Virus record (IMG/VR): IMGVR_UViG_3300042889_001272
Location: 62,001 to 126,000 of that record
Direction: 5' to 3' (one strand)
Length of the DNA: 64,000 nucleotides
The position numbers and the translations under genes were made by a program. The notes under the pieces were generated by a model. It was given only the letters and a program-made list of their open reading frames with translations, was not told the origin of the DNA and made no database searches. Below, in pieces: positions 25,456-46,810 of this stretch. Positions within the stretch are counted from its first letter, which is position 1. The number at the start of each line of letters is the position of its first letter.

Positions 25456-25493
25456 AATCCTTGCTAAATAACATATTAGCAAGGATTTTTTTT
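25456..25493 (+). terminator. Intrinsic terminator overlapping a late promoter
   Basis: 12-bp stem AATCCTTGCTAA / TTAGCAAGGATT followed by a T run; TAAATA at 25465. Confidence 0.7.
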
Positions 25494-27320
25494 ATGCGTT
25501 TTAACGAATTAACAGAACAATCACAATTAGATGAATTTCAATTGAATCCGACTGGTGCATTAGCCAGCATTATTAGATGGGGTGCTGAAAATCCAGCCGT
25601 GCTGGCGGCATTGGGTATTGCAGCCGGCGGCGGCGCATTCGCATTAACAAGTGGTGCAGCCGCACTAGGTCCATTGATGGCTGCTGTTACTTCTATTAAT
25701 GCGGGACAAGGCGCATTAGGTTTACTTAGTCTAGATAAACTCAAAGATTTAATTCAACAAAATCCCAGTCAGGCAGAAGGTTACATTAAAAAGTTAATTT
25801 ACAAATATGTAGGTGATCAATCAGACGTTGAAGAATTTGAAAAACTACACGCACAAACTGCTTATAAAGGTGAAACAGAATTCCGATGGAGAGCAGAAAA
25901 TTGGCCAGTAACAATGGACAAGAATGCCGCCGAAAGTTATTTAGAAAAGAATGACAAATATTGGTTGGATACTTACAATCAACCGCAAGGTGTGGCGGAA
26001 GGCGGCAGCGATTACGAAGAGTTACAGGACAAAATAGAGTGGTTAATGGGTGCGCCAAATTATCTAAAATCTGACGAGGCCAGAGAAACAGCAGCCTATA
26101 CACCAGATACTGATTCTGTCTGGGCCGGTTATCGTGATGACCAATTGACTAAGAAAAATGAATCAGTAACCGAAGCAAAGAGCTTACATAAGCGTGTTAA
26201 AATCGTCAAAGGACCGTATGCCGGAAAGTACGGCTGGATCCGCGAAATCAAACATGGCGCCTACAAAGGTGCGCCAAAAACATATTATGTCGATGTTGAA
26301 GGCGGTGGACAAGCTAACAACTTATCATCAAGTGAGTTGCGTTTGGCAAAAGAGCAAAATGTAACTGAATCCCAAGAAGATATGACTCCGAATTGGGCCA
26401 AGTATGTACTGGATCAAATTTACAACAGTGATGGCGCAGTCACACTGACTGACCTGTTTGACGAAGGTATCCCGGGCTTGCACGACATGTTCATGGCAAC
26501 TGCTAAAGCACATGGCCTTGATCCAGAAGAAGAATTTGAAGATGTTCAACATGAACTAACTGTAGAATTAGAAGATATCATCAAAGGTGGCCATGGATTG
26601 GACGAAGGCTATTACGATCTTAACAGTGATCTTCCAGGAATGGAACCAATTGACTTTTCATCTAATCCAAGTTTTAAAGATCTTATTACTCGTTATACAC
26701 AACTTGTATATCAAGGTCATGCCAGTGAAACAAGCCCAGAAGAAGATCAAGAACACGACGAGATCGAACAGTATGTTGCCAAACGTTTCGGTGAAAAAGG
26801 TTCTGCACATTTACAAAAAGCAGGCGAAGTTAGTTATTGGGGTCGAGATGACGGTAAAGGTAGCGGACACATTCGTTCCAGCAACTTAGGTCGTCCAAAT
26901 CAACCAGGTGGTAATTTCCGCACAACAAAATCAGGCAAGATGCACGGTCAAGATGTTAAAATGATGAAGAACAAAGTTGCAGATAGATTAGGTCGTCATC
27001 CTGAACCATCATTACCAGAAGGTAGATATGATAACCGCGATGCTTATCAACGTGATTATGACAACAGTGTAGCAGGTATGGGCAAGCGCCAATCTTATGC
27101 TTATAGTCAAGACGGCGGTGCCAACGATGAAGGATGGAACAATTATAAAGAACCAGAACCTAAGCGTAAAATTTACTCTTTGCAAATCAACGGAAAAACA
27201 TGGACACAGGATGGCAATACTGTTACGTTCTTTACACGAGAACGTGCAGAATCTGCAAAAAATTCTATACTGAACAAGCGTCCAGAAACAAAAATTGTAG
27301 TAATGGTACAAGAAGTTTAA
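25494..27320 (+). CDS. Modular putative internal head polyprotein
   Basis: Starts MRFNELTE (ATG 25494); modules joined by QGVAEG, ESVTEA, QNVTES, LDEG, LPEG. Confidence 0.7.
   Translation: MRFNELTEQSQLDEFQLNPTGALASIIRWGAENPAVLAALGIAAGGGAFALTSGAAALGPLMAAVTSINAGQGALGLLSLDKLKDLIQQNPSQAEGYIKKLIYKYVGDQSDVEEFEKLHAQTAYKGETEFRWRAENWPVTMDKNAAESYLEKNDKYWLDTYNQPQGVAEGGSDYEELQDKIEWLMGAPNYLKSDEARETAAYTPDTDSVWAGYRDDQLTKKNESVTEAKSLHKRVKIVKGPYAGKYGWIREIKHGAYKGAPKTYYVDVEGGGQANNLSSSELRLAKEQNVTESQEDMTPNWAKYVLDQIYNSDGAVTLTDLFDEGIPGLHDMFMATAKAHGLDPEEEFEDVQHELTVELEDIIKGGHGLDEGYYDLNSDLPGMEPIDFSSNPSFKDLITRYTQLVYQGHASETSPEEDQEHDEIEQYVAKRFGEKGSAHLQKAGEVSYWGRDDGKGSGHIRSSNLGRPNQPGGNFRTTKSGKMHGQDVKMMKNKVADRLGRHPEPSLPEGRYDNRDAYQRDYDNSVAGMGKRQSYAYSQDGGANDEGWNNYKEPEPKRKIYSLQINGKTWTQDGNTVTFFTRERAESAKNSILNKRPETKIVVMVQEV
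25986..26003 (+). repeat. GVAEG junction repeat, copy 1
   Basis: CAAGGTGTGGCGGAAGGC. Confidence 0.9.
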
Positions 27321-27321
27321 T

Positions 27322-27720
27322 ATGAGACTAAATGAATTCTTAGACAACGATGTTCCTGAAATAGGCGACATTTTAGAAGTAGAGATAGGCGACGAAGTTG
27401 TTGAAACTGTGATCACTGCCATAGACAATGGTGACTACATCTGTGAAACAGACAACAACACTAGTATGTCATTGCTTGAAGCAGAATATCACGGACGCAA
27501 AGTAAAATTGGGCAAACCCATGCCAGGCGATGTTAAAAAATCAAAAGTCTATGTTAGAAATCCTAAAACAGGTAAAGTAATCAAAGTAAACTTTGGTGAT
27601 CCTAATATGCGTATTAAAAAATCTAACCCTGCACGTCGTAAGAGTTTTAGAGCAAGACACAACTGTGCCAATCCCGGGCCGCGAACTAAAGCCCGTTACT
27701 GGAGTTGCAGTAAGTGGTAA
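27322..27720 (+). CDS. Putative internal head protein with basic C-terminal module
   Basis: MRLNEF start; LLEAEYHGRKVKL...KVNFGDPNM...RRKSFRARHNC...ARYWSC. Confidence 0.7.
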   Translation: MRLNEFLDNDVPEIGDILEVEIGDEVVETVITAIDNGDYICETDNNTSMSLLEAEYHGRKVKLGKPMPGDVKKSKVYVRNPKTGKVIKVNFGDPNMRIKKSNPARRKSFRARHNCANPGPRTKARYWSCSKW

Positions 27721-27737
27721 ACATTATAAATAATACT

Positions 27738-28187
27738 ATGAAAAAACTATTAATCTTAACCCTGCTAGCTATTAGCTCATTTGCATTTGCACAAACTGCA
27801 CCTAAAGAAAAACCCATGGTCATATATGACTGGAAAATAAACCGTGTTGTAGATGGTGACACAGTAGAAGTGGCCACACCTTGGGTACCAGATCCATTAC
27901 CTAAAAAGATCAGCATTCGTGTATTTGGGGTAGACACTCCGGAAAAAGGACACAGAGCGTTATGTCCCAGCGAAGCACAGCGTGGCGAAGCCGCCAGTGC
28001 ATTTACTAAAAAAGTTATCACAGAAAGCAAGACTGCCCGAGTGGCAGTCTTGAGCTGGGACAAATACGGTGGCCGTATGCTGGGCGATATCATTTTAGAT
28101 AATAATGTTAGCCTACGTGCGCTATTAATCAAGAATGGTTTTGCTCGAGAATACTATGGCGAAGCCAAGCAAAGTTGGTGTAATTAA
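27738..28187 (+). CDS. Thermonuclease (SNase-like) with signal peptide
   Basis: MKKLLILTLLAISSFAFA; RVVDGDT, IRVFGVDTPE, DKYGGRMLG, LIKNGFAR; TATAAATA at 27725. Confidence 0.88.
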   Translation: MKKLLILTLLAISSFAFAQTAPKEKPMVIYDWKINRVVDGDTVEVATPWVPDPLPKKISIRVFGVDTPEKGHRALCPSEAQRGEAASAFTKKVITESKTARVAVLSWDKYGGRMLGDIILDNNVSLRALLIKNGFAREYYGEAKQSWCN

Positions 28188-28199
28188 TTAAAATTTAAC

Positions 28200-28228
28200 T
28201 TGATATTTCATATGCTTTATGTTATAAT
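28200..28228 (+). promoter_or_regulatory. sigma70-type promoter
   Basis: TTGATA (28200) - 17 nt - TATAAT (28223). Confidence 0.75.
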
Positions 28229-28239
28229 AGTTGCACGAA

Positions 28240-28318
28240 ACACTCTACCTTAGGACCTTTGCGTTATAAGAGTGTAGGCGGCTGCTGCCTAGAATGTAAG
28301 TTACGCCAGACTTCATTC
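28240..28318 (+). promoter_or_regulatory. Structured 5' leader (candidate cis-regulatory RNA)
   Basis: Three consecutive stems: ACACTCT/AGAGTGT, TAGGC/GCCTA, GAATG-AAGT/ACTT-CATTC. Confidence 0.55.
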
Positions 28319-28343
28319 AAAGTGAGCATTAATTTTGGATATT

Positions 28344-29087
28344 ATGTTTACAGAAAAAGTCACTTGGGTTCATCACTGGAGTGATCGTACATTTAGTTTT
28401 AAATGCACTCGCAGTACAGCATTTAGATTTGTTGCCGGCGAATTTGCCATGATTGGCTTAATGATTGATGGCAAACGTGTGATCCGTGCATACAGTATAG
28501 TAAGTCCTCCCTGGAGTGAGGAACTGGAATTTCTCAGTATTAAAATACAAGACGGTGAATTAACCAGCAAACTTCAACACATAGAAGTTGGCAGTGAAGT
28601 CGTAGTCATGCCCAAATGCACAGGCACATTAGTAAATTCTGCATTAACACCTGGCGGAGAATTATGGATGCTGGCCACTGGTACAGGGCTTGCGCCATTC
28701 ATGAGTTTGATTCGTGATTTAGAAACACTGGAAACTTGGACGAAGATTCATATTGTACATAGTGTTAGACATAGTTCAGATTTAGCGTATAATGTAGACT
28801 TATCAACAGCGTTCAAACTTCATCCGGTAGATGGAGAGTTGCACGACTTGGTTGATGCTGTATTGGAATATCATCCTATACTTACTGGGCAAGGTGAACC
28901 CAGAATCGGCTATCAATTAACCACAGGCATGCTAAAGATTAACACTGACATAGATAAAATAATGCTATGCGGCAATTTAGAATTTAATCATCAAGTCTCC
29001 GATTGGTGCGAAGCTCGGGGTATGATGGAAGGAAGTATCCGTGAACCAGGAACATTTGTAGTAGAAAGAGCATTCGTAGAAAAATAA
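28344..29087 (+). CDS. fpr: Ferredoxin(flavodoxin)-NADP+ reductase
   Basis: FVAGEFAMIG, RAYSIVS, GELTSKL, LWMLATGTGLAPFMS, MLCGN, FVVERAF. Confidence 0.92.
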   Translation: MFTEKVTWVHHWSDRTFSFKCTRSTAFRFVAGEFAMIGLMIDGKRVIRAYSIVSPPWSEELEFLSIKIQDGELTSKLQHIEVGSEVVVMPKCTGTLVNSALTPGGELWMLATGTGLAPFMSLIRDLETLETWTKIHIVHSVRHSSDLAYNVDLSTAFKLHPVDGELHDLVDAVLEYHPILTGQGEPRIGYQLTTGMLKINTDIDKIMLCGNLEFNHQVSDWCEARGMMEGSIREPGTFVVERAFVEK

Positions 29088-29102
29088 GCAATAAATACTA
29101 CT

Positions 29103-29954
29103 ATGAAGACAGCAATCATAGTTAATGGAATGTGTCGACAAACATTAGTATCGTCAATGTCTTGGGACATATTTCCTTTTGAAGCTGATTGGTATCTTAG
29201 TACTTGGGATTACACACAAGAAACATATTTTCCAGACTCATTCACAAGCAAGAAAGAAATCGACAATATTAGGCATTTTTTTAAGCACATAGAAATAAAC
29301 AATTACGAAGAATATTTTACAAATTTTATAATTAAAGGTCGCGTCAACCCAATGTTTCGAAGTTTTAAATTATTAGATTCTATTAGAGATATAATTTTAT
29401 CACAGAAGTATGAAAGAATTATTATATTTCGACCAGATTTATACTTTAAAAAATTAGAACATCTTAATAATAATGACTTTGAAATTAATAATAACACAGT
29501 TAGAATTTTAGGAAGACATGAACCAGATAGTTTCTATGATAGAAAAAGAAGCACAGCAGATGATGTATTTTTTGTAATGCCCACTAATATATTTAAGATG
29601 TATTCAGATTTAAATTATATGTCTGAATTAAATGACAAATTTAATATTAGATCCGATGTACATAAATTAACATTTCATTTTTTCGACTCTTTGGGTTGTA
29701 ATGTAAAACTCATAGAAAAAATTAGATCGACTATTGTACGTAAGGACGCCGGCGACTATTATACAGAACATAACAATATCGATTTTACAATAATTGCAAG
29801 AATATTCGACAAAATGTATGATGAAAAAGATATGACAGGTGTTGGAAAGTTTTGGTGGCAATTTAATAAAATTATTATACATGAGCCAGCAGATCCAGAA
29901 AAGATTAGAATATCACAAGAGACTGGTGGAATTTTGAAATTAAGGAAACAATGA
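29103..29954 (+). CDS. AT-rich hypothetical protein, possibly glycosyltransferase-like
   Basis: ADWYLSTWD, IIFRPDLYF, DDVFF; TAAATA at 29092. Confidence 0.45.
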   Translation: MKTAIIVNGMCRQTLVSSMSWDIFPFEADWYLSTWDYTQETYFPDSFTSKKEIDNIRHFFKHIEINNYEEYFTNFIIKGRVNPMFRSFKLLDSIRDIILSQKYERIIIFRPDLYFKKLEHLNNNDFEINNNTVRILGRHEPDSFYDRKRSTADDVFFVMPTNIFKMYSDLNYMSELNDKFNIRSDVHKLTFHFFDSLGCNVKLIEKIRSTIVRKDAGDYYTEHNNIDFTIIARIFDKMYDEKDMTGVGKFWWQFNKIIIHEPADPEKIRISQETGGILKLRKQ

Positions 29955-30484
29955 AAACATTGATATTAGTAGCGTTACCGGAAGAGTTAGATAAGAATTT
30001 AGTAGATTGCCCTGTTGTTTATACAGGTGTAGGTGTGGCAAATGCCGCGATGCATACAACGTTGGCTTTACTTAAACATCGCCCTGACTTAGTTATTAAC
30101 TATGGCAGTGCTGGCAGTTTAAAAGGTATCACAGGATTAAACAGCGTAGCCAGTGTTTGTCAACGGGATGCTGATTGCAGTCCACTTCGCCAAAGAGGTT
30201 ACATGTTAGGCGAAAATGTGTTATACTATCACAGTGAAGAAGTAGGCGTTAGAGTAGGAAGTGGTAATAACTTTGTCACAGATCCTGATGCTTGGACACT
30301 TGAGCATTGTGATTTAGTGGACATGGAACTTTGGAGTATTGCTAAAGTCTGCGATCATGTTAAGATACCGTGGATAAGCCGTAAGTGGGTCAGCGACAAT
30401 GCTGACGGAGATGCTGGTGCAACATGGGAAGATGCACTACTAGCTGGACAAACAGAATTTGTTAATTGGTTTAATAACCGTTAA
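29951..30484 (+). CDS. MTA/SAH nucleosidase-like (PNP_UDP_1 family)
   Basis: LILVALPEE, YTGVGVANAA, VINYGSAG, GSGNNF, VDMELWSIAKVC, KWVSDNADG. Confidence 0.8.
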   Translation: MKTLILVALPEELDKNLVDCPVVYTGVGVANAAMHTTLALLKHRPDLVINYGSAGSLKGITGLNSVASVCQRDADCSPLRQRGYMLGENVLYYHSEEVGVRVGSGNNFVTDPDAWTLEHCDLVDMELWSIAKVCDHVKIPWISRKWVSDNADGDAGATWEDALLAGQTEFVNWFNNR

Positions 30485-30499
30485 TAATTACTTTTAATT

Positions 30500-30960
30500 T
30501 ACACATATGTTTGATTAGCGATGGCTAATCCCTATTGAGGTTGTACAGATTGTGCTGTGCCGTCGGAGTCTTAGGTTGTGTACGTCAGGAACTAACGAAA
30601 GGTTCTAAAAGATTGCGGCTCTGTGAAAAAGATACAACCGCAGATATTCACAGTTTCGCTGTATGGGATTGTGGAGTCACCGCTGACAGTCAAGTCTTGA
30701 GTAAGGGGTACCGGTCAACCGCCTCTGTTTTAATTAAATCTCATCAATACAGTATGAAAACGAACTCACGAAATGTTTTTATTTTTTGCCGGTTAACGGC
30801 AAATTATGACTTGAATCTACGAAATATTAAACCAGTGTTAAATCAAAATTCAAAACAATAAAGAGAATAGAAAATTGTTTCGAATACGAAGTATGAAGAA
30901 ACAATGTGCAGAGCACATACTAAGATGCGTGTAATATATGGATAGTTACGACTATCAGAT
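30500..30960 (+). ncRNA. Candidate large structured non-coding RNA (or origin-like element)
   Basis: ~500-nt gap in dense coding sequence with many hairpins (GATTAGC-GATG-GCTAATC, TGCGG/CCGCA, TTTGCCG-GTTAA-CGGCAAA, ATGTGC-AGA-GCACAT, GATAGT-TACG-ACTATC); strand not established. Confidence 0.5.
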
Positions 30961-30986
30961 AAATATTCATAATTACAGGAGCTTTT

Positions 30987-32396
30987 ATGTCAACAGATAA
31001 CTTTGGCGCATTAGGCGCAGACTTTTTTATAAGAACATTTGACAAGAGCTCGTTGATGAGTCAGTCAGATCTAGATCAACTCATTCAATATGTACAATTA
31101 ACCACAACGATTATAGCCGTAGGAGAATTTACTCCCGGTGTACAACAAAGTGTTTGGATGATACTTGAACGTGTAGATGTGCCATCAGCGCCAGGATACA
31201 CAGTAACTAACAACACAGAAGTTACAATGACTTCCGGCGGCTTGGTGACAATTGACTCGATACCGTGGACAAAGATAACAGGCAAGCCAAGTATCCCAAC
31301 AGATATTAACGATCTAACAGACACAGGTGGTCTGTTAGCAAATACAGGTGACTTTACATTCACTGGCGGTACTGCTAGTTTGCCGGCAGACAGTACTATG
31401 ATTCTTGATACTTTTCAAGTTGGTGGAAACAAGCAATCTACTTTAACTCTAAGTACTGCTACAATATCCAGTTTAGATGCTGGAAATAATCTAAGACTTA
31501 GAACTGGTTATGGAACTGGATTTGAAAAAGATTGGATACTTGGCGCTGATGGTTCTATTAGATTCCCCGATGCCAGTGTACAGACAACTGCTTATACTGG
31601 CAGTGATCATGCAGCCTATGAAATAACAAACACAAGTCCAGAAGGCTCTATATATTCTGTTAGCGTAGGCACTGATGGCGTTGTTAGTATGGTTACAAGT
31701 CGTGGTGGCATTGAGTTTGGCGCCATGCCAGAAGTTGGCGGACCAACACACTTCCACATTATGCGACCTGCTGGTGATAATGGTACAGACTTGTACTTCG
31801 GTGACGACTACAACTATGTTCTTCAACGCCCATCCGCATACGGCGGCGCCCCAGCATACGGTGTAGAGATTGGTGCCAACGATAATAATGGTGGTGCTCA
31901 ACAGGTATGGCGTTTTGGCACAGACGGCCACTTAACATTGCCAGCAGGTGGCGATATTAAAGACAGTACAGGTGCTAGTGTATTAGGTGGTGGTTTCAGT
32001 GGTGACTATGATGACTTAACCAACAAGCCAACATACAGAATAGCTGTGCCAACTGGCACAGGCCCTGGTGGCAACTTGCAAGCAGATTCACTGGCACTGG
32101 CTGGTCTTAATCCTGTTACAGATATACCATCAACTTGGGGTGGCGACTTGATACTTCAAGGTGGTGTAGGTGGCGCCAACAGCGACTTATATGGTGAAGT
32201 TAGAATCAAAAGCGGCCAGATTGGTGCAAATTATGAATGGCACTTTACCACTGATAAAAAGATTAAACTACCAGCAGGTGGTAGCATTGTTGACAGCACT
32301 GGTGCAAATGTATTTGTTTCTTTGACTACTCTCAAACAAGTTGTTGCAGACAGTACAGACTTTGCTGATTTTCAAACTAGAATTGCAGGTATGTAA
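30987..32396 (+). CDS. Putative tail fibre/virion protein
   Basis: WTKITGKP, repeated W.FG.DG.L.LPAGG.I.DSTGA motifs, DYDDLTNKP; TAAATA at 30960. Confidence 0.65.
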   Translation: MSTDNFGALGADFFIRTFDKSSLMSQSDLDQLIQYVQLTTTIIAVGEFTPGVQQSVWMILERVDVPSAPGYTVTNNTEVTMTSGGLVTIDSIPWTKITGKPSIPTDINDLTDTGGLLANTGDFTFTGGTASLPADSTMILDTFQVGGNKQSTLTLSTATISSLDAGNNLRLRTGYGTGFEKDWILGADGSIRFPDASVQTTAYTGSDHAAYEITNTSPEGSIYSVSVGTDGVVSMVTSRGGIEFGAMPEVGGPTHFHIMRPAGDNGTDLYFGDDYNYVLQRPSAYGGAPAYGVEIGANDNNGGAQQVWRFGTDGHLTLPAGGDIKDSTGASVLGGGFSGDYDDLTNKPTYRIAVPTGTGPGGNLQADSLALAGLNPVTDIPSTWGGDLILQGGVGGANSDLYGEVRIKSGQIGANYEWHFTTDKKIKLPAGGSIVDSTGANVFVSLTTLKQVVADSTDFADFQTRIAGM

Positions 32397-32412
32397 TAGA
32401 CCCTAGCATAAT

Positions 32413-32436
32413 AAAAGCCCCTTGCGGGGCTTTTTT
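32413..32436 (+). terminator. Intrinsic terminator
   Basis: AAAAGCCCC-TTGC-GGGGCTTTTTT. Confidence 0.9.
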
Positions 32437-32503
32437 ACGACTATAATTTATATCAATTAAATGTTTTATTTCTAATAAATACTAGTTATATATTGGAGTT
32501 AGT

Positions 32504-33286
32504 ATGATATTAAATGAGGGCGGTGATGTATTTGCAGACACCGAAGAATATGACCAAAAAGAAGCAACCGCTTTACAGGCTGTTGTAGATAAGGAATTAT
32601 CTTCTATTGGTCTATCATCCGTTATGATTGGCAGCGGTTTTCATCCTACTCCTGGACAAATGAGCGGGGATTTGGATCTACAAATAGAATTACAAGATAT
32701 CATTGATCGCTTCGATGTACAACCTGACCCTGCTGTTAAAAAAGATACTATAGAAAATGCTGCCCGCAGAACGCTGGCAGCACATCTACAAAGTAAAGGA
32801 TATCAAACAAAACGAGCAGGTATAAATGTTTTTATTCGTGTTCCTTATCAAGGTAAGTTTTATCAAGTAGACTTGGAATGTATATATAAGGTAGCAAAAG
32901 TAAGCAAATATCATCAGCATAAAATTCCTCAAGGTAGTACATACAAAGGCGTGGGCAAACAAATAATGATATCTATGTTGGCCAAAGAAAAAAATATGAT
33001 GTGGAGTGGTTGGGAAGGTTTATTTCAACGTACTCCTGATAATAAAAAAGGCGACATGGTCGCCGATGACTTTGATGATATAGCAAAAGTATTACTCGGG
33101 CCGCAATATGGTGAAGAAGATTTAGGCAGTGTAGAATCTATATTGGCTGCGCTGCCAAGTGCAAAAGCACAAGATTTATTGGCCAGGGCCAAGGCCGACA
33201 AAGCATGGAAAGAACGTGTGCCACGTGTAGAAAGTCTGCGTGTTGGCACCAATGAATGGTTCCGTAATATGATGAACAAGTTATGA
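32504..33286 (+). CDS. Pol-beta-superfamily nucleotidyltransferase-like protein
   Basis: MILNEGG start; GS...SGDLDL and FYQVDL motifs; TAAATA at 32476. Confidence 0.55.
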   Translation: MILNEGGDVFADTEEYDQKEATALQAVVDKELSSIGLSSVMIGSGFHPTPGQMSGDLDLQIELQDIIDRFDVQPDPAVKKDTIENAARRTLAAHLQSKGYQTKRAGINVFIRVPYQGKFYQVDLECIYKVAKVSKYHQHKIPQGSTYKGVGKQIMISMLAKEKNMMWSGWEGLFQRTPDNKKGDMVADDFDDIAKVLLGPQYGEEDLGSVESILAALPSAKAQDLLARAKADKAWKERVPRVESLRVGTNEWFRNMMNKL

Positions 33287-33942
33287 AAATAAACGACATT
33301 TTACGCGAGTACGACCAAGACTCTGCCAATAGTAAACAAATCATAGCAAAGCTGAAACAACTTGGATACAAGAGTGTTGGCAGCGGATATGATGCAACTG
33401 TATGGACCAAAGAAGAAGGCAGTGTTATTAAAATCATTATGCCGCAGGAGTTGTCTCGAGCAGAAGGAGACGCATCGTTTTTAGGGTTTTATGAGTTTTA
33501 TACTACACATAAGAAGTCACCATTCCTGCCAAGATTTATCAGCATTGGTGGCGCCGATCATACTGTGTTTACACTCAATGGAGTAGACTATAGACAAATA
33601 TCAATGGAGAATCTTGAACCCATTGCTAATAACAGCTTTATGGAACAGATGGTGTGGGCACTCAGTGACTTGTCCATTATACCTTTTATGAAATGGAGAG
33701 ACGCTAAAGAGCAACTGCTTAACTCTGAGTTTTGGACAAATTTTGAAGGACCAGGTAGAGAAAGCGACATCGTAAAAGGACTAAGTAATTCGGCAGTAGA
33801 GAAGATGTATGCAAGTTTATTTGCAGTGATGCAAGAGCTTTTTCAATTTGGAAAAAGTCAAGGACTGGGTTGGGATTTACACACTGAAAATGTTATGCGT
33901 CGAGGTGATACACCAGTTATCACTGACCCGTTTACCGGATAA
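33283..33942 (+). CDS. Kinase-like protein (protein kinase/APH fold)
   Basis: MKINDILRE start; GSGYDATVW, VIKII, WDLHTENVM, VITDP. Confidence 0.65.
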   Translation: MKINDILREYDQDSANSKQIIAKLKQLGYKSVGSGYDATVWTKEEGSVIKIIMPQELSRAEGDASFLGFYEFYTTHKKSPFLPRFISIGGADHTVFTLNGVDYRQISMENLEPIANNSFMEQMVWALSDLSIIPFMKWRDAKEQLLNSEFWTNFEGPGRESDIVKGLSNSAVEKMYASLFAVMQELFQFGKSQGLGWDLHTENVMRRGDTPVITDPFTG

Positions 33943-33946
33943 TAGT

Positions 33947-35915: not shown

Positions 35916-35923
35916 AAGAAATT

Positions 35924-38482: not shown

Positions 38483-38736
38483 GATCCGTAAATCAAAGTT
38501 ATACAACTATTGATATCATTGTCGATGAATTTGACGAACAAATTATTGATATGTTAAAACAACGGTATCCTGCTTTATCTATTGCAAGAGTAAATGCTAC
38601 TAGATTTAACAAAGATTCTACTAACTTGTTAAAGTTTTATCTATATCATTGGATATTTGATAACTATGAATCTGCTATCGTTGACATTAATAATTATTAC
38701 AATAAATATACTATTAGCACGAAAGTCGTAGCATGA
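38479..38736 (+). CDS. AT-rich hypothetical protein
   Basis: Coupled ORF lacking the shared N-terminal tag. Confidence 0.45.
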   Translation: MRSVNQSYTTIDIIVDEFDEQIIDMLKQRYPALSIARVNATRFNKDSTNLLKFYLYHWIFDNYESAIVDINNYYNKYTISTKVVA

Positions 38737-40949
38737 AATATCTAGAACTAAAAGAACAACTACTCAACGAAATTAATATGAGCCCCAGTGCTTTACGCCG
38801 TGCTGCCAAAGACATTGGTGCTAAGGCAGGCATGGAATTTGAAATGATTGTTCCCGGTGCTGCCGAAAGCGAAGAAGGTGATGACTATCAAGAACCAGAC
38901 TACGACAGTGATGAAAGCATTCGCAGTATTCAAGATGCCTATGATTTCTTCTACGATGGTGATTTTAATAGCCGTAGAGATGCAGAGCGCCTACGTGATC
39001 AAATGACAGACAACTACACTGATTGGCTGGGCACTCAATCTGGGGATCGCTGGGAATCTGATAAAGAAGAAATGATATATGATTGGCTGCGCTACAATGC
39101 CGCGCCCAGCGATGTATTTGGTATACTAGAAGTAGCTGCCAGCGCCAGCGGAGATTATCCTGATCCCTCTAAAGAAGATTACAGAAATGCTGCCGCCAAA
39201 GTAGCTGAAGATAGAATAGATCCATGGTATGACGATGCTTATCAAGATTTTACTGACAATTTCTACAGAGATGCAGACATGGAAAGTGAATGGCTCGAAC
39301 ATGAAGCTATAGAAAGTATGGTCGACGTTGAACAGAATTATAACATTGTTTGGCCACATTATCATAATCCGGATAACTCAGGCGGTGATGTTAGTATACA
39401 AGATGCCGCAGACAGTTTCAGTAATGCCATTGGTAAAGAAGTACAGGCCAGCGACAATTATCACAGTCGTAGTATAACAAGACCCAGTGCCACAGAATTA
39501 CACTATGTTGTGGAACCTGACGGTAGCTTAGAAGCAGATGAACCCGGAGATGGCGGTTTAGAATTTGTCAGTCCAGCATTGCCCATAGATGAATTATTAG
39601 ATGACTTGAAAAAAGTTAAAGCATGGGCAGATAAGTTTGGCTGTTATACAAATGACAGCACAGGTTTGCACATCAACGTCAGTGTTCCAAAATGGCAAGG
39701 TGATTTGCAAAATCTAGACTATGTTAAACTTGCTATTTTAATGGGCGACGAATATGTTTTAGAAAACTTTGGACGCAGTGGTAATACCTATGCCAAAAGC
39801 GCACTAAAGATTGTTAAAGATAATATCACACAGCGTCCAGAAGATGTCAAACGTTTGTTAGACACTATGAAAGAGCACTTAAACACCAGCGCCGCAAAAT
39901 TAATACACAGTGGCGCCACTAGTAAATACACCAGCGTTAATACCAAAGATGGTTACATTGAATTCCGTAGTCCAGGTGGTGATTGGTTAAACAGTAACTT
40001 TGATAAGATTGAATCTACATTATTACGTTTTGTTGTAGCCATGGATGCTGCCGCAGACGAAACAAAATACAAAGAAGAATACGCCAAGAAACTTTATAAG
40101 TTATTAGCAGGCAATGACAAAGATACTACAAATACCATGGTTTACTTTGCCAAATATGCCGCAGGTGAATTGCCTCAGAGCGCATTAAAGAGTTTTATTA
40201 AACAAGCACAGTTTGAACGTAAGGCAGGCAAAGAACCCAATGGTAAAAAAATGTGGTATCGTGTTGACAAAGAAGGACGTGGTAAGAGTGGTGCAAGCAT
40301 TGAAGTTGTTGCTAGATCAAAAGAAGAGGCATTAGAAAAAGCAGCCAGTAATTGGAGTTTAAAGCTAAGTGCATTAACTGCGGCCGCTGTTTATCCAGTT
40401 CGCCCCTATGAAGAGCAACGCTACGAAATATTTAATTTAAACACAAACAATAGCGTAGAAGATGCTGAAGGTATTACTAATGATAGAGATGCATTAGTGC
40501 GTTTGCAGGATTACATTGAACATGGTCCTCACGGATTACAACGTGGACAAGCAACAGATATGTTTGGCATAAGACGAGTTGGCGGAGATGGCGAACCTAT
40601 ACAACCAAATCCAATTCGTGCTACTGTAGGCGCTCCACAACCTGCTGGTAGTGTTGGACAATCAACTCCTAGACCTATTCCCGGTGTTATTGATATTGAG
40701 CCTGATATAGAACAGAACTTTACACCTGTACCAGGTAGCACAACAAACTTACAGCAACAACGTGCAACACCCGGCACGTTTACAGGTGCTTGGAAAGTAA
40801 TGAATGTCGACACTGGACAAGAATTATATAGATTCAGCGGCATTGGTAATTCGCAGTCAGATGCTAATGGTGTCGCTTTACAATGGATAAGACAACATGC
40901 CCCGAACACAGACTTGGTACAAATTGAAGTTGTGCCCATAATGAGCTAA
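38733..40949 (+). CDS. Putative amidoligase (COOH-NH2 ligase type 2) with C-terminal modules
   Basis: MKYLELKE start; GMEFE, VEPDGSL, GLEFVSP, STGLHINVS, IEFRSPGG. Confidence 0.7.
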   Translation: MKYLELKEQLLNEINMSPSALRRAAKDIGAKAGMEFEMIVPGAAESEEGDDYQEPDYDSDESIRSIQDAYDFFYDGDFNSRRDAERLRDQMTDNYTDWLGTQSGDRWESDKEEMIYDWLRYNAAPSDVFGILEVAASASGDYPDPSKEDYRNAAAKVAEDRIDPWYDDAYQDFTDNFYRDADMESEWLEHEAIESMVDVEQNYNIVWPHYHNPDNSGGDVSIQDAADSFSNAIGKEVQASDNYHSRSITRPSATELHYVVEPDGSLEADEPGDGGLEFVSPALPIDELLDDLKKVKAWADKFGCYTNDSTGLHINVSVPKWQGDLQNLDYVKLAILMGDEYVLENFGRSGNTYAKSALKIVKDNITQRPEDVKRLLDTMKEHLNTSAAKLIHSGATSKYTSVNTKDGYIEFRSPGGDWLNSNFDKIESTLLRFVVAMDAAADETKYKEEYAKKLYKLLAGNDKDTTNTMVYFAKYAAGELPQSALKSFIKQAQFERKAGKEPNGKKMWYRVDKEGRGKSGASIEVVARSKEEALEKAASNWSLKLSALTAAAVYPVRPYEEQRYEIFNLNTNNSVEDAEGITNDRDALVRLQDYIEHGPHGLQRGQATDMFGIRRVGGDGEPIQPNPIRATVGAPQPAGSVGQSTPRPIPGVIDIEPDIEQNFTPVPGSTTNLQQQRATPGTFTGAWKVMNVDTGQELYRFSGIGNSQSDANGVALQWIRQHAPNTDLVQIEVVPIMS

Positions 40950-40950
40950 T

Positions 40951-42030
40951 ATGAGACTACTAGAATTAAAAGAAGATAAATCATACCAACCTACTAGCAT
41001 TGATGTAGGTGACGAAGTACTTGTGGGTAAGTTTAAAAATCGCAGAGCAGAAGTTAAAGGGTTTACCACTGATGATAATAATCAGCCTGTGCTAAAAACT
41101 TCCAAAGGTGATCAACATTTATTCAAGCCACGCATTGCTAAACTTATGCCCAACGAGGTTAATGAAGATTCCGGTAACAGCCTTCAAACTATTATTCAAT
41201 CCTTTGTCAATAGTCCTTTAGGACAAAAATATAAACAATACGATTGTAAAACTGTAACCAGAGCATTTGTACAATGGACAGAACAAAATAAGATTTCAAC
41301 GCAGGTAGTTTCATTGGCTCCTCCCAGTGCTGATTTTATTGCAAAGAATCCAAGATATAAAGGCAAGAGTGGACAGGGCGATGGACACATTATGCCTATA
41401 GTAAATGGCAATGCCATTGACTTCACTGTTAGACAATTTGGTGTTAGTAGACCTTTTAACAATCCACTAGTAACGCCAACCAATAGTCTGCCAGCAGTAT
41501 ACGGCAAATTCGGATATTTTACAGACAAGCCTGAATGGTTTTTAGGAGGCAAGTCCCATTGGATTGGTGCATTGAACGCAATACCAAAAGAAATCTTTAA
41601 TCAAAATTTTGGCGATGAAATGTTAGAGCATACTATGACAGAAAACTTTGCCGATGGTCGAGTAAAAGGTAAGAGTAGTCCTGGACGTGTTAAGCGTAGT
41701 GGCGCAAGCTGTGACGGAAGTGTCTCTGATCTAAGATCAAAAGCAAAAGATGCCAGTAGTGAACGTGCTAAAATGTATCACTGGTGTGCTAACATGAAAA
41801 ACGGCCGTGCTAAAAACGAATCAGAAATGTTAGAAGATTTAAACGTTATATGGAAAGATGTATTAGAAGCAGGTGTATATAAAGGTTATCCTTGTACCAA
41901 AGACTGTAGCGGACATGCCGCAGGCGATCGTTGGGCAGATGCTAGAGATATAACAGATCCCAACGAGTGCCCTTACAGTAACAACAGTTTCTGGGAAGGC
42001 TGTCTAGCGCATACCGATGAACAAGAATAA
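40951..42030 (+). CDS. Modular putative internal head polyprotein
   Basis: MRLLELKE start; modules separated by VNED, MTENF, MLED, VLEA. Confidence 0.65.
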   Translation: MRLLELKEDKSYQPTSIDVGDEVLVGKFKNRRAEVKGFTTDDNNQPVLKTSKGDQHLFKPRIAKLMPNEVNEDSGNSLQTIIQSFVNSPLGQKYKQYDCKTVTRAFVQWTEQNKISTQVVSLAPPSADFIAKNPRYKGKSGQGDGHIMPIVNGNAIDFTVRQFGVSRPFNNPLVTPTNSLPAVYGKFGYFTDKPEWFLGGKSHWIGALNAIPKEIFNQNFGDEMLEHTMTENFADGRVKGKSSPGRVKRSGASCDGSVSDLRSKAKDASSERAKMYHWCANMKNGRAKNESEMLEDLNVIWKDVLEAGVYKGYPCTKDCSGHAAGDRWADARDITDPNECPYSNNSFWEGCLAHTDEQE

Positions 42031-42047
42031 CGAATAAATATACTATT

Positions 42048-43403
42048 ATGCGATTACTAGACCTTAAACTAACAGAAGCGGCACTTAGTGCAGGCGAACT
42101 AACAAAATACTTTGACTCTGAAACAGAGCCGACAAAGTGGAAACGTCTTAACGTTTTCTTAAACAAAGTCCTACAAAAAGAACCATTCGAATTAGTAGAT
42201 GGCAGCACAGCATTAGTTAATACATCTGAATACAAACGTATAGCAGATATTTTTAATTTAGGAACTGTGCCAAGTAATTTTAAAGTTGACACAGATAAAG
42301 GCCCAATGGGTTTAAGTAAGTTTTTTAAATCAGCAGAACTGGGAGGCAAGGGTGCTGGCGGCGCCGGTTTGTCTAACAAAGGTGAAGTCAGTGAGGGTAT
42401 TCTAGGTGCTAGTTTATTTGCTAAACTTATAGCAAGGACTCGTGGTAAGATTGATATTATCAGTGGTAATGACATTTGGAACGTCATTGACATGTTAAAT
42501 CAAACACAGGAAGATCATTACGGTGTTAAAGTTAAAGATGCTAGTAAATCTGCTGTTAATGATAGTATTCAATATACATTAAAGTTAAAGCCAGGACCAT
42601 ATGCAGACTTAATGGACGAAGCAAAACGAGCATTGTTAAGTGATGTAACTAACAGCGCAGTAGCATATGCTAATAGTGCAGATGCTCAAGCATACTGTGA
42701 ATATTTTTACTTAAATGGTAAGCCGGATATTATTCATGTTATTACAGACGGTATCAGCGGAAGCACTACTAAGAAATCTGACATTGAAGTTGTTGTCACA
42801 GATCCAAAAACTGGTAAAACTACACATCAACAACTTAACATTAGTCTTAAAGCAGGCAGTGACCAAATGGGTCAAGTCGGTCAAGGTGATGTTGGCGAAG
42901 AATTTGATGCTCAGAAGAAACTATGGAACTCTTTTGGCATTGACATCGAATCAAGCAGAGCTGAATTTAATAAAGTATTAGAGAAAAAAGGTTTAATAGC
43001 AGCCATAGAATCTATCTATCGTGATGCTGCCACATTCCTTCAAGACTTGTTAGCAGGCAGTTTTGATGATGCCGAATACTTGTTTTTAAAAGACTTGGTA
43101 AAAGGCATTGACTATTTTGCTACATTAAACGATCCCTCAGTTATTTTAGTTAGTTTAGAGCGCGGAACTTATGAAGTTATGAGCTTTGCTAACTTAGAAA
43201 AACAATTAAATAACATTGATTTAGACGCTAGTTATAACGAAAACTCTGCTACTCCTCAGATAGAAATATTTGATAAAAATAGTGGCAGTCAGTTATTTAG
43301 AATAAGAACAAAACGTGAAACTAAAAAGGGCGGTGGCATTTATGTCCGTAATTACATTGAAAAAGGTCCTTTGTTAAAACAGTTGACCAGCATCAAGAAG
43401 TAA
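42048..43403 (+). CDS. Possible PD-(D/E)xK nuclease-fold protein
   Basis: MRLLDLKLTE start; SEGILG...KSDIEV...NISLKAG spacing; TAAATA at 42035. Confidence 0.45.
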   Translation: MRLLDLKLTEAALSAGELTKYFDSETEPTKWKRLNVFLNKVLQKEPFELVDGSTALVNTSEYKRIADIFNLGTVPSNFKVDTDKGPMGLSKFFKSAELGGKGAGGAGLSNKGEVSEGILGASLFAKLIARTRGKIDIISGNDIWNVIDMLNQTQEDHYGVKVKDASKSAVNDSIQYTLKLKPGPYADLMDEAKRALLSDVTNSAVAYANSADAQAYCEYFYLNGKPDIIHVITDGISGSTTKKSDIEVVVTDPKTGKTTHQQLNISLKAGSDQMGQVGQGDVGEEFDAQKKLWNSFGIDIESSRAEFNKVLEKKGLIAAIESIYRDAATFLQDLLAGSFDDAEYLFLKDLVKGIDYFATLNDPSVILVSLERGTYEVMSFANLEKQLNNIDLDASYNENSATPQIEIFDKNSGSQLFRIRTKRETKKGGGIYVRNYIEKGPLLKQLTSIKK

Positions 43404-43439
43404 TACGTTATATTGACATAAATTGGCATAAATAAACAT

Positions 43440-43649
43440 ATGAAAATAAAAGAACTTATCAGCGAAGACGGCAGCGCAGGCGGTATTAGCAGTGGCGCTA
43501 TAGCTTCTGCTCCAGCCAGCAATTTGTTTGCTGTACCTATGAAACGCAATATGGCAATGACTCGCAAGCGACCTAAAAAGGAAGCTGAAGAATTTAAAAC
43601 TAAAAAAGATAAGTCTAATGTTTTAGAAAATGGAACTAACAATGGATAA
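43440..43649 (+). CDS. Small putative internal head protein
   Basis: MKIKELISE start; TAAATA at 43429. Confidence 0.65.
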   Translation: MKIKELISEDGSAGGISSGAIASAPASNLFAVPMKRNMAMTRKRPKKEAEEFKTKKDKSNVLENGTNNG

Positions 43650-45024
43650 GCAAAGAGCCAGACAGCTTTATGAACTAGCAGATCGTTTAAGCAAGCTAGA
43701 CATTAATTCGCTGTCAGAACAACAATTAGAACAACGTAATACAATGATTTCTAAGTTGCAAGAAGAAGTTAAAACAATTAAAGAGTTTGCTCCTGACGAT
43801 GGCGACGATGGCGCAGGTGGCGAAGAAGATACATTACACAAATATGCCCGTATGTGGTATAATGGCAATGAAACTACACAACAACAAGTTGAAAAAATAT
43901 TAGACCGTATGGGTTGGGAAATTGGCGAATTAGAATCAGAAGAAGGTGGCGCTTTTGTTGTACAATCAGGTGACGAAAATGGTAATAGTTATATTGGCTT
44001 TGCAGTCGCTGACTTGTTAGAAGGTATTACTGATAATAAAGACGCTGGCGAATATGATCAAGAAGGCGATATGGCTCGTCAAGATCTTGCCACTGCCGCT
44101 AATGCCGCAGAAGAATTACGCAGTATTTTAGACAGCGATGAGAACTTGCCAGAATGGGTTCAATCAAAGATTACTAAAGCAGTTGACTATTTAGATACTG
44201 TTCGTGATTATATGAAAAGTAAAGATCAAGATGTAACAGAAGCTTCACAGCGAGTTGATTCACTGGTCACTGACGCATTAAAAATAATGCGTGGTTCATC
44301 AATGAATGATGCTGTTCAAGCATTAAAGACTGTGCTTGGTGATAGAGAATACAATGGCCGACGCAATCATTACAATTTCTATGTTAGACAAATCATGGAT
44401 ATGTATAGTCAGCAAGGTGTGGCGGAAGGCGTTGAGGAATCCAATGTAAAGATTTTACAAAAGTTGCTTGCAGACGAAGGTTACACTTATCCAATTGGAA
44501 TACTAAGTCGAAGATTAAAACTTCTTTCCACAAATCAATCAAAAGTGCTTGCGAGATTGTTTGTGAATGCTCAAAGGGCACAAGATGAAGAATTAAAACT
44601 TGAATTGATTGATAAAATTGATGGTGTAATTTCCAGGGAAGCAGAGAGAAGAAGCGATCCATGGAAAGGTGTGGCGGAAGGCGTTGCAGAAACTTTGTCA
44701 ATGGACGAAGCCAAAAAAGTGCTACGTCATTATGGTGCTGATAATTTCAAAACAACCAGCAACGAATTGCATTTTTATAAAAACGGCCGCCCATTCAGTG
44801 TTGACTTGATCATGAACGATGATGCAACTCGCAGTGTAAGTCTAAGCCAGTTAAATTCAGCTACTCGTAGATTAAAAGGCCAAGGTGTGACTGAAACTAA
44901 AAAGACAAGCCCAAAACTCACGCCAGTTAATATCAAAAAAACTGACCCAGTCAGTGAAGAAATAAATACAGAAGCATACGAAAGACTACAAAAGGTTTTC
45001 GCATTTAAGAATTATGAAAGTTAA
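43630..45024 (+). CDS. Modular polyprotein with GVAEG junctions
   Basis: Junctions IKEFAP, LLEG, QDVTEA, QGVAEG, KGVAEG, QGVTET; start 43630 or 43642. Confidence 0.7.
   Translation: MELTMDKQRARQLYELADRLSKLDINSLSEQQLEQRNTMISKLQEEVKTIKEFAPDDGDDGAGGEEDTLHKYARMWYNGNETTQQQVEKILDRMGWEIGELESEEGGAFVVQSGDENGNSYIGFAVADLLEGITDNKDAGEYDQEGDMARQDLATAANAAEELRSILDSDENLPEWVQSKITKAVDYLDTVRDYMKSKDQDVTEASQRVDSLVTDALKIMRGSSMNDAVQALKTVLGDREYNGRRNHYNFYVRQIMDMYSQQGVAEGVEESNVKILQKLLADEGYTYPIGILSRRLKLLSTNQSKVLARLFVNAQRAQDEELKLELIDKIDGVISREAERRSDPWKGVAEGVAETLSMDEAKKVLRHYGADNFKTTSNELHFYKNGRPFSVDLIMNDDATRSVSLSQLNSATRRLKGQGVTETKKTSPKLTPVNIKKTDPVSEEINTEAYERLQKVFAFKNYES
44407..44434 (+). repeat. GVAEG junction repeat, copy 4
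   Basis: AGTCAGCAAGGTGTGGCGGAAGGCGTTG. Confidence 0.9.
44666..44686 (+). repeat. GVAEG junction repeat, copy 5
   Basis: AAGGTGTGGCGGAAGGCGTTG; 21 nt identical to 44414-44434, 252 nt apart. Confidence 0.9.
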
Positions 45025-45026
45025 TT

Positions 45027-46433
45027 ATGAAACTATTTGAACTATATCAACAAAATACCCTACAAGGTACTAATAACTTAAAACAGATCTCAGAAGCTGT
45101 GGCCAATAAGACTGGTGCAGTTATTACTGTAGGTAACACTCAAGTTAGACTTGGCATTAACAGTGCTAAGTACGTTCTTGGTTTATATGAAACCGCAGTT
45201 GCCAATGGCACCAGCGAACAATTCTTAGAAGGCCTGGCCAATCTAAATCCAACAATGGTCATGGAAAACGATAACACAATGCGTCACATTGTCAGCAAGT
45301 TCAAGCATGAAGTTAAAAACTTCTTAGCTGGTGATGATATGAGCGATGACTTATATCATGCATTGTATGACTACTACAGCGACCACGGTGAAATGCCATA
45401 TGGTATTGCTAAAGCTCGCGACGGTGATCCTTATGAATGGGTTCACATGAGATTCGATCGTGATGTACATGATTACGTTGGCGGCAACAATCCAGATGTT
45501 CCAGCATTACCACAAGCAAATATGTCAATGATGCCGCGTCAAGAAAGCATGTACGAAGCATCTACTATCAATGGTAAAGTACAAGACCCTAAAAGCCTAA
45601 CTTGGAAACAAACTAGTATGAGCTATGAAAAAGCTGTAGAAAAATACGGTAAAGACAAAGTCAGAAAAGAAGGTAAAAATCGTATAGGCAACGAAGTAAT
45701 TGCAGTACATGTTCCGCTAGAGGAAAGCAATATGTATGAATCTAAGAAAACAAAGATGAAAGAAGGATGGGATGAGATGATGGCCGCCGTTCGAGCCAGT
45801 GCTCAAGATGAAAAAAGTGCTACTGGTAAGTTTTCCAGATCAAAGAATCCTGACTCAGGCGGAACAGTTTATAGCCGCAAATATAATGCAGACACGGGTC
45901 AATCCATTGAGCCAACTAAAGATCCAGAAGGTAAATCTCCTATCAAGCGTAGTGTAGGTCGTCCTAATGCTGGAGTTACAGGCTCAGATGAAGCAGGAAC
46001 TAAATTTGGCGATTATTCAAGCTGGTATCATAAATCCAAACGCACACACGGCGATCGTAAAATTGTTGGCGGTAGAACTGGTGCTATGGCAGTTATTGAA
46101 AAAGGTAAAAAATATCTAGTAGTCGGTAAGTGGGAAAACGACGAAGGTGTTATGTTTGATAAACCCAGTGAATTGGTTACATTAGATGCATTGAAATCTT
46201 ACAAAAGCGGTAAAGGTCGTCCGAAGAAAGTTCGTGAATGGATTGAAACTCTGCGTTTTGTATCTGAGGGTGAAACAACTAAAACAGCAACTGGTATTAA
46301 ACATAGTGCTAAAGGCAAATATGGCGCCAGTGAGGAAGAAGAAAAAGAACCGGAAAGTCTAAACAAAAGTTTGACCAGCAAGTTAGATAAGAGTATGGGC
46401 ATTAAACACGATCACGGAAATAAAAAGAAATGA
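45027..46433 (+). CDS. Modular putative internal head polyprotein
   Basis: MKLFEL start; ISEA, VMEN, MYEA, LEES, MKEG, VSEG junction-like sites. Confidence 0.65.
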   Translation: MKLFELYQQNTLQGTNNLKQISEAVANKTGAVITVGNTQVRLGINSAKYVLGLYETAVANGTSEQFLEGLANLNPTMVMENDNTMRHIVSKFKHEVKNFLAGDDMSDDLYHALYDYYSDHGEMPYGIAKARDGDPYEWVHMRFDRDVHDYVGGNNPDVPALPQANMSMMPRQESMYEASTINGKVQDPKSLTWKQTSMSYEKAVEKYGKDKVRKEGKNRIGNEVIAVHVPLEESNMYESKKTKMKEGWDEMMAAVRASAQDEKSATGKFSRSKNPDSGGTVYSRKYNADTGQSIEPTKDPEGKSPIKRSVGRPNAGVTGSDEAGTKFGDYSSWYHKSKRTHGDRKIVGGRTGAMAVIEKGKKYLVVGKWENDEGVMFDKPSELVTLDALKSYKSGKGRPKKVREWIETLRFVSEGETTKTATGIKHSAKGKYGASEEEEKEPESLNKSLTSKLDKSMGIKHDHGNKKK

Positions 46434-46810
46434 AAATTGCTGAAATTCTTAGTGAGATGAAATGTTGGCCTGGACATCGAAAAGTCGGCACACAACCTGG
46501 CACAGGTAAGAATAAAGGCAAGCGTGTCAACGACTGCGAAAAGATCAAAGAAGAATTAGATGACGATCAAAAGCGTGTAGGACAAGTCGGTGCAAAAGAA
46601 AAAGCAAAAAAGATTGGAACAGTATTAGGCACAGCTCCTAAGCAACATTCATTTAAAGGTCGATTAGTAGGTGAGTCTGAAATAAAAGAAGTTGCTCCTC
46701 CTGGTATGGAAGACTGGATCAAAGATCGTAAAGCAGACTTCAAAAAGCGTTATGGCGATAAGTGGGAAGAACGTTTATACGCCACTGCTTGGAAACAGCA
46801 TAATAAGTAA
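46430..46810 (+). CDS. Small modular putative internal head protein
   Basis: MKIAEILSE start; IKEE, IKEVAPPG junctions. Confidence 0.65.
   Translation: MKIAEILSEMKCWPGHRKVGTQPGTGKNKGKRVNDCEKIKEELDDDQKRVGQVGAKEKAKKIGTVLGTAPKQHSFKGRLVGESEIKEVAPPGMEDWIKDRKADFKKRYGDKWEERLYATAWKQHNK

Follow-up and report, generated by a model that had tools for sequence, protein, structure and literature searches.

We analyzed a 64,000-nucleotide (nt) stretch of virus record IMGVR_UViG_3300042889_001272 (hereafter the window), which corresponds to positions 62,001-126,000 of the 235,561 bp Joint Genome Institute (JGI) contig 3300042889 Ga0453676_0000004 and in which a block of genes between 25.5 and 46.8 kb encodes otherwise unrelated proteins that begin with a common short N-terminal leader (Table 1; genes are named by the position of their first nucleotide). 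The guanine-cytosine content of the window is ~39%, and its plus strand holds all convincing genes except one. Sequence near-identical to the window was present in lake-water metagenomes, and a megablast search of the tagged block against GenBank phages returned no match. The DNA polymerase gene at 48595-51240 is of the gp43 type and belongs to the T4 superfamily, with 41-48% identity to the polymerases of jumbo myophages (Sinorhizobium Phosso, Agrobacterium Atu_ph07, Vibrio 2.275.O, Xanthomonas XaC1, CBB and GAP32); further genes encode a gp44-type clamp loader, a tail-fiber-like protein and a structural protein of the virion. Judged from these sequences, the source genome is that of an uncultured lake-water jumbo phage, a distant T4 relative within the T4 superfamily.

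Table 1. Leader-bearing genes, promoter-like sites and the Clp-type gene of the window (aa, amino acids; pI, isoelectric point; a slash marks the end of the leader)
Feature	Coordinates	Strand	Properties
608 aa, MRFNELTE/Q	25494..27320	+	weak KOW/SH3-like piece; phrog_26930; TAAATAA at 25465, AAGGA before ATG
132 aa, MRLNEFLD	27322..27720	+	basic, pI 9.5; phrog_7595
260 aa, MILNE/GGDVF (doubtful member)	32504..33286	+	only a 5-residue L-N-E prefix; ATAAATA at 32475
219 aa, MKINDILRE/Y	33283..33942	+	protein-kinase-like fold; related to stand-alone 'Kinase-PolyVal' / T7 0.7-type kinases
142 aa, MLIKELTE/N	33947..34375	+	basic
382 aa, MRLLELKE(LME)/A	34372..35520	+	DUF6267; invariant KWDG motif (ligase-like lead only)
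132 aa, MRINELD	35517..35915	+	Endonuclease VII / HNH-like; basic
852 aa, MKINQVLVE/S (marginal score)	35924..38482	+	N-terminal cytidylyltransferase-like nucleotidyltransferase domain
738 aa, MKYLELKE/Q	38733..40949	+	Amidoligase_2 domain; ATAAATA at 38702
359 aa, MRLLELKE/D	40951..42030	+	in relatives fused with other tagged bodies (791 aa in L003)
451 aa, MRLLDLKLTE/A	42048..43403	+	phrog_3560; ATAAATAtactatt immediately before ATG
69 aa, MKIKELISE/D	43440..43649	+	Gly/Ser/Ala stretch, then basic tail, pI 10.2; ATAAATAaacat before ATG
468 aa, MKLFELY..ISE/A	45027..46433	+	basic, pI 9.0
126 aa, MKIAEILSE/M	46430..46810	+	basic; body fused behind another tagged protein in L003
ATAAATA, block sites	25084, 27726, 29091, 30959, 32475, 38702, 42034, 43428, 44962	+
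ClpA/ClpB-type double AAA+ protein, 733 aa	11377-13578		Clp_N, two AAA domains, ClpB_D2-small; phrog_4871, E = 4e-243

An initial annotation of the window had listed fourteen genes with a shared N-terminal tag, and all fourteen ATG starts translate exactly as it gave them, each fitting the tight gene packing by lying just past, or overlapping, the preceding stop codon. The leader consensus is M-[KR]-[ILFY]-x-[ED]-[LIF]-x(1-3)-E, and leaders of 8-12 aa precede conserved bodies. A position matrix was built on residues 2-8 and scored by leave-one-out; 12 of the 14 starts reached 3.9 to 13.7, and none of the window's remaining 68 gene starts exceeded 3.6. The start of gene 35924 (MKINQVLVE) scored 1.8; it carries L-V-E, and its orthologs are clearly tagged (e.g. 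MKLRELFE/APGETVGLIFGRFNP). The start of gene 32504 (MILNEG) scored -3.3, and its orthologs read MILNE/GGNVF or begin at MGGNVF, so that this gene has at best a 5-residue mini-leader. The tag is thus shared by 12 to 13 genes on the evidence of the matrix and the orthologs, and the membership of 32504 is doubtful. A profile scan of gene starts, which the initial annotation had put forward as a check, showed the motif to be enriched in the block (13/21 genes at 25.5-46.8 kb versus 0/60 outside it; Fisher p = 5e-10). No tagged start was found on the minus strand of the window, nor in the flanking contig at 53-62 kb and 126-145 kb.

The leader is a feature of the protein rather than of the DNA. The two MRLLELKE leaders differ at 5/24 bases, all synonymous, and across the set Arg is encoded by AGA, CGT and CGA, Leu by TTA, CTA, CTT and TTG, and Glu by GAA and GAG; the bodies behind the leaders are mutually unrelated (best E = 0.027 in an all-against-all BLASTP of 13 bodies). 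Since synonymous codons vary and the bodies share no similarity, the leader appears to be portable at the protein level, and neither a DNA repeat nor paralogy accounts for it. In the AlphaFold models of two tagged proteins, the predicted local distance difference test (pLDDT) score fell below 50 at residues 5-18 (DUF6267 protein) and 1-8 (kinase-like protein), compared to a mean of 87, which places the leader outside the folded bodies, at least as modeled.

The block also has a distinct promoter-like context. ATAAATA, which is the late promoter core in T4, occurs at 11 sites in the window against 25.5 expected; 10 of the 11 are on the gene strand, and 9 of these 10 fall within 25084..44968, 5-65 nt upstream of ATG starts, so the motif is concentrated in the tagged block. 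The initial annotation had stated that several tagged genes follow TAAATA elements, which is correct for 25494, 32504, 38733, 42048 and 43440. At five places ATAAATA lies merely 5-8 nt before the ATG (9208-9222, 27726-27740, 29091-29105, 42034-42050 and 43428-43442), and with T4-like initiation the corresponding mRNAs would be almost leaderless and lack a Shine-Dalgarno sequence; in the RNA runs consulted, only 5% of sampled words were present, too little for transcript-start mapping. This spacing raises the question of whether the similar starts are a by-product of initiation on nearly leaderless late mRNAs, which would favor A/T-rich unstructured first codons and leave the peptide without a targeting role. 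The first codons are indeed A/T-rich. However, the conservation is at the amino-acid level while the Arg, Leu and Glu codons vary, genes 9220, 25160, 27738, 29103 and 30987 share the promoter motif and carry no tag, and the Glu/Leu pattern is retained through 35-99% divergence, also where the leader varies in length. Such a by-product fits the data poorly, and we regard it as highly improbable.

To follow the leader in relatives, we used two of the tagged proteins to retrieve 97 related loci from IMG/VR. Of the tagged starts in these loci, all 321 were on the gene strand and 0 on the opposite one; they represent 209 unique proteins in 38 body families. Among 26 aligned DUF6267 orthologs (57-91% identical), the body is almost invariant from GRAFNHLEDL onward, and the leaders differ in both length and sequence (MRLLELKE, MRYQELIE, MRFNEFRRITE, MRLRELFVESTE); all of them keep M-R-[FYL]-x-E-[FL] and end in hydrophobic-x-E just before the invariant body. 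The nucleotidyltransferase family of gene 35924 behaves in the same way, with leaders ending ..LFE/A.. (e.g. MKLRELFE/APGETVGLIFGRFNPPH). A database search with the 219 aa kinase-like protein returned 66 relatives, down to 35% identity and nearly all tagged, and the longer ones, which add a GNAT domain or the N-terminal part of the 40951 protein, have a single leader at the extreme N-terminus. Close orthologs of the 27322 protein are tagged, and distant ones begin MFEQGF without a tag. Outside the clade, the cyanophage P-HM1 homologs of DUF6267 and of the cytidylyltransferase are untagged, and the cyanophage ACG-2014f homolog of 42048 aligns only to residues 114-446, indicating that it lacks both the leader and the N-terminal region.

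Fusions between bodies that are separate tagged proteins in the window were also seen in relatives (L003 3747, 791 aa; P0010, P0017, P0045, P0056), joining the 40951 and 46430 bodies, GNAT and the kinase, or the 40951 N-domain and the kinase. Each fusion has one leader at its front, which means that the tagged set undergoes active domain shuffling. Shuffling of this kind recalls the cassette exchange at the internal protein (IP) locus of T-even phages, and the common start might accordingly be a functionless relic of shared ancestry or of recombination cassettes, for which the fused 791 aa and GNAT-kinase proteins could speak. The bodies share no similarity, however, and the leader is clearly constrained in distant orthologs though the DNA has diverged, a pattern that suggests retention under selection. 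A relic also fits the data poorly, and we find it scarcely credible.

We next compared the leader with known packaging signals. The internal proteins of T4 carry leaders of 10-19 residues that target them to the scaffolding core (PMC9026906; PMC3012670), the propeptides shed from the N-termini of T4 virion proteins are 7-65 residues long, and the T4 protease gp21 cuts after Glu in L/I-X-E, as first shown on a Glu-Ala bond (PMC9026906). In the window, [LI]-x-E ending at residues 5-12 was found in 13/13 tagged starts compared to 11/68 other starts (p = 7e-9, a test that is not independent of the motif definition). The P3 residue of the leaders is Leu, Ile or Phe, and the first [LIVFM]-x-E is followed by Ala more often than by any other residue (44/147 cases). 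The leaders share with the T4 capsid-targeting sequence (CTS) of IPI, IPII, IPIII and Alt a short Met-Lys start, an acidic/hydrophobic pattern and a hydrophobic-x-Glu end; like the CTS, which belongs to late-expressed genes in T4, they are common to otherwise unrelated proteins. The N-terminus MKTYQEFIAE that the initial annotation had quoted for IPIII was found in the T4 record, for IPII as well. The consensus nevertheless differs, being M-K-T-Y-Q-E-F-I-A-E in T4 and M-[KR]-[IL]-x-E-[LIF]-x-x-E here, and whereas three IPs and Alt, mostly small basic proteins, are the leader-bearing set in T4, the window has 12-13 such genes in one 21 kb block, including those for large enzymes of 40-96 kDa. 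T4 gp24 begins MAKINELLRE, close to MKINDILRE here. In phiKZ and SPN3US, many packaged proteins, among them inner-body and ejection proteins, also lose propeptides after Glu to a gp21-related protease (gp175/gp245; PMC9026906); their propeptides are long and varied and their cut motif is S/A-x-E, which the window leaders, with Leu/Ile at P3 and a short common tag, do not carry.

Head modules of relatives provide a second line of evidence. Cultured relatives (Phosso, Atu_ph07, Vibrio 2.275.O and CBB) and >600 IMG/VR loci encode gp21 homologs, which conserve the GVSSRG and LGExDHP motifs with T4 gp21 and were confirmed as Pfam Peptidase_S77 in four loci. The small proteins encoded between portal and protease in these relatives begin MKLFEMFDE, MILNELYE, MRYLEILKE or MKLTELFNPLTE; they occupy the position of T4 gp67, and a similar leader recurs in many related head modules. 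The tagged amidoligase protein (38733-40949) has a homolog in Atu_ph07, gp196 (E = 2e-16), whose gene lies next but one to the portal gene, and the published Atu_ph07 virion proteome includes both gp196 (14 peptides) and the 9 kDa gp199, which starts MKLTELFNPLTE. The RsoM2USA proteome spans only ten bands and is uninformative on its homolog. Taken with the clustering, portability, conservation, absence outside the clade, cut-site-like end and late-promoter-like context of the leader, the gp21 homologs, the gp67-position leaders and the virion location of gp196 and gp199 make a T4-type capsid (prohead-core) targeting propeptide the best explanation of the leader, one to which we attach moderate confidence. 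On this sequence evidence the leader would be a CTS analog or a diverged relative of the CTS, and not the same sequence; a direct homology to the T4 CTS was dropped after the window matrix, applied to the T4 genome, missed the known CTS proteins.

The same head-module evidence also bears on whether the tagged proteins leave the capsid with the DNA. The leader could target the prohead core and be cut while the proteins act in the head or its assembly, or are degraded and expelled, and are not injected. In T4, the core proteins gp67, gp68 and gp22 are cleaved into fragments and for the most part exit the head; the N-termini in relatives that most resemble the leader are those of the gp67-position proteins; and several members of the tagged set resemble DNA-associated internal proteins in being small and basic. 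However, folded enzymes (kinase fold, amidoligase, nucleotidyltransferase) with no obvious role in the capsid make up most of the tagged proteins, and gp196 persists in mature Atu_ph07 virions. T4 gp24, gp67 and gp68 and the gp67-position proteins are structural or core proteins encoded in head modules, whereas the tagged genes of the window encode enzymes and proteins of unassigned function in a separate block adjoining the DNA polymerase gene. We consider a role confined to the core unlikely. The initial annotation had proposed that the tagged set is packaged and injected; packaging is partly supported by the cut-site-like end, the portability of the leader and the virion homolog gp196, and injection is a further step that we only infer.

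A signal unrelated to the capsid was also considered, in which the leader is read by the phage ClpA/ClpB-like AAA+ unfoldase, a chaperone, or an enzyme complex or compartment and controls the turnover or co-localization of late enzymes. The phage encodes a 733 aa Clp-type ATPase 12 kb upstream of the block, relatives such as Atu_ph07 have many Clp genes, the tagged set is rich in nucleotide-handling enzymes, and the AlphaFold models depict the leader as a flexible, exposed helix. We know of no Clp degron that matches the leader pattern, which counts against a Clp signal, and signals of this class would leave unexplained the [LI]-x-E/Ala end, the leader on gp67-position proteins beside the portal and protease, and the virion location of Atu_ph07 gp196 and gp199. 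This possibility therefore appears quite improbable to us.

The tagged bodies themselves were characterized by domain and structure searches. Foldseek gave probabilities near 1 for the kinase-like fold of the 33283 protein against APH, PknB and VRK2; its relatives matched Kinase-PolyVal below the Pfam cut-off (24 vs 27 bits), and a weak T7 0.7 kinase family match was also obtained. DUF6267 has the invariant motifs KWDG, GEGRVRY and K-x-V-x-R-K, reminiscent of covalent nucleotidyltransferases (ligases); a Foldseek search with its model gave nothing significant, with DNA ligases only among the weak matches, which leaves the KWDG motif as the sole basis of the ligase idea. In the 35924 protein the nucleotidyltransferase domain (GRFNP..HxGH) begins directly behind the leader. 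DUF6267 and the cytidylyltransferase-like gene are neighbors at 34372-38482 and in cyanophage P-HM1 (L237 4980-8073), and certain database clusters contain the two as a fusion. Basic proteins, with pI values of 9.0-10.2, in the tagged set comprise five small ones and one of 468 aa. Atlas searches with the 25494 and 45027 proteins returned nothing usable. The short 43440-43649 gene was also considered as a frameshifted head of 43630-45024, which was ruled out, as a separate open reading frame (ORF) of 61-72 aa is kept in relatives and the 43630 orthologs have their own conserved start.

These domain types match those proposed for injected phage effectors (PMC5512222), which adds to the case for capsid targeting. 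Polyvalent proteins, whose domains have been proposed as early effectors delivered alongside DNA (Iyer et al. 2017, PMC5512222), and MuF-fused effectors likewise include a PolyVal-type kinase, GNAT (here in the fused relatives), a nuclease and amidoligase-type enzymes, and they too show domain shuffling among relatives. Polyvalent proteins, however, combine 2 to 15 effector domains per polypeptide, often with MuF/portal or relaxase-type delivery modules, whereas the window proteins mostly have one recognizable domain each, are encoded by separate genes and carry no MuF/portal fusions; the delivery handle is a structural domain in the former and would be a short cleavable leader here.

Several observations weigh against the capsid-targeting interpretation. 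No head gene or protease was found between 53 and 164 kb of the 235.6 kb contig, and none in the next ~10 kb as read on a related Logan contig; along this walk lay metabolic genes together with a suf operon and a radical S-adenosylmethionine (SAM) cluster of very large size. A tblastn search with the Atu_ph07 portal and protease against all tag loci gave no match, and two IMG/VR scans with gp21 homologs returned hundreds of loci, none on this contig. A Peptidase_S77 head module from the samples that contain this phage, traced by exact look-up of a protease from the same study, was recovered on short separate contigs only and may stem from another genome. The N-terminus of Atu_ph07 gp196 (MRWQDISSKKLTE) reproduces the tag imperfectly, and [LI]-x-E is a low-information motif present in 16% of other gene starts. 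The resemblance to the T4 CTS claimed in the initial annotation holds for position, length and the terminal L/I-x-E and fails in register, which is off by one residue, and in matrix score (-7 to -14; IPI -7.5, Alt -10.3, IPII and IPIII -14.3). Finally, DUF6267, the nucleotidyltransferase and the Endonuclease VII-like nuclease might act inside the infected cell and not as cargo, a role made plausible by the strong conservation and core-like character of tagged enzymes that have untagged cyanophage homologs.

Under the capsid-targeting interpretation, the short amphipathic leader would attach the tagged proteins to the scaffolding core late in infection, the shell would close around them, and a prohead protease of the gp21 family (Peptidase_S77) would cut the leader off after the Glu of [LI]-x-E, leaving the mature enzymes and small basic proteins with the packaged DNA, probably to enter the host alongside it. 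Core binding, cleavage, packaging and injection of the tagged proteins are all inferred steps. Going by the leader, loading of the 13 unrelated tagged proteins into the capsid is probable, and their injection into the host is possible.

Other features of the window and its surroundings were recorded as well. Two gaps without a convincing ORF, tRNA or Rfam match (28188-28334, ~150 nt; 30485-30986, ~500 nt) interrupt the otherwise tightly packed block, the larger ending at an ATAAATA site, and no tRNA genes or Rfam families were found in the window. A PhoH-like gene (7660-8484) is the sole convincing minus-strand gene of the window, the small plus-strand ORFs opposite it (8000-8418) probably not being genes; a 65% identical PhoH-like copy adjoins the protease locus of an Atu_ph07-like phage (L108). 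The 74 aa product of 10316-10540 belongs to the IF-1 / eIF-1a fold family (PF01176), a phage-encoded translation initiation factor 1-like gene. Collagen-like Gly-X-Y runs occur near the N-termini of three proteins (8518-9198, 20262-20822 and 62981-63346), and proteins with such runs adjoin tail-fiber-like genes (14843-20251).

A run of sugar-nucleotide and 7-deazaguanine-type genes at 53365-63879 includes a GFO/IDH/MocA oxidoreductase, ADH_N, a cytidylyltransferase, UDP-glucose dehydrogenase and GTP cyclohydrolase I, with SAM synthetase, ThyX and more radical SAM genes downstream, which suggests DNA or surface modification pathways. At 53-5192 the window holds a full suf iron-sulfur (Fe-S) assembly set (SufB, C, D, S, E, FeS_assembly_P, an IscA-like protein and glutaredoxin). 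About 20 kb beyond the window end (contig 144-174 kb, read as L239 10874-20885, L240 1-19691 and L241 1-9984), a minus-strand cluster encodes >12 radical-SAM/SPASM enzymes together with an Asp/Arg hydroxylase-like protein, a nitroreductase, a carbamoyltransferase and other biosynthetic genes. Fe-S clusters for this unusually large radical-SAM set may come from the suf genes.

The proposal that T4-like phages load varied proteins by means of a CTS has already been published (PMC9026906, PMC3012670), so the gain here lies in breadth and cargo and not in the concept; what is new is the distinct leader consensus, the many enzyme families over which it extends and the uncultured clade of lake jumbo phages in which it occurs. 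Should the leader prove to be an address label for the capsid, it would allow packaged and probably injected proteins to be listed from sequence alone for a large group of uncultured lake phages, and it would give DUF6267, phrog_3560, phrog_26930 and others a location and a testable role. The cargo list would be unusual in consisting of folded enzymes of 15-96 kDa and not small inhibitors, which suggests that these phages deliver catalytic host-takeover or anti-defense activities ready-made. For a phage that is uncultured, the initial annotation's suggestion that the leader could serve to deliver proteins is speculative. In a wider reading, which we take as possible without yet calling it probable, a widespread freshwater and in part marine jumbo-phage clade loads dozens of enzyme families as a first-strike arsenal through its own cleavable label; this arsenal would include a kinase, an amidoligase, a nuclease and the ligase-like DUF6267 together with the nucleotidyltransferase that is its partner. 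Were this so, the first ten residues of a protein would be enough to recognize injected effectors of uncultured phages directly in metagenomes.

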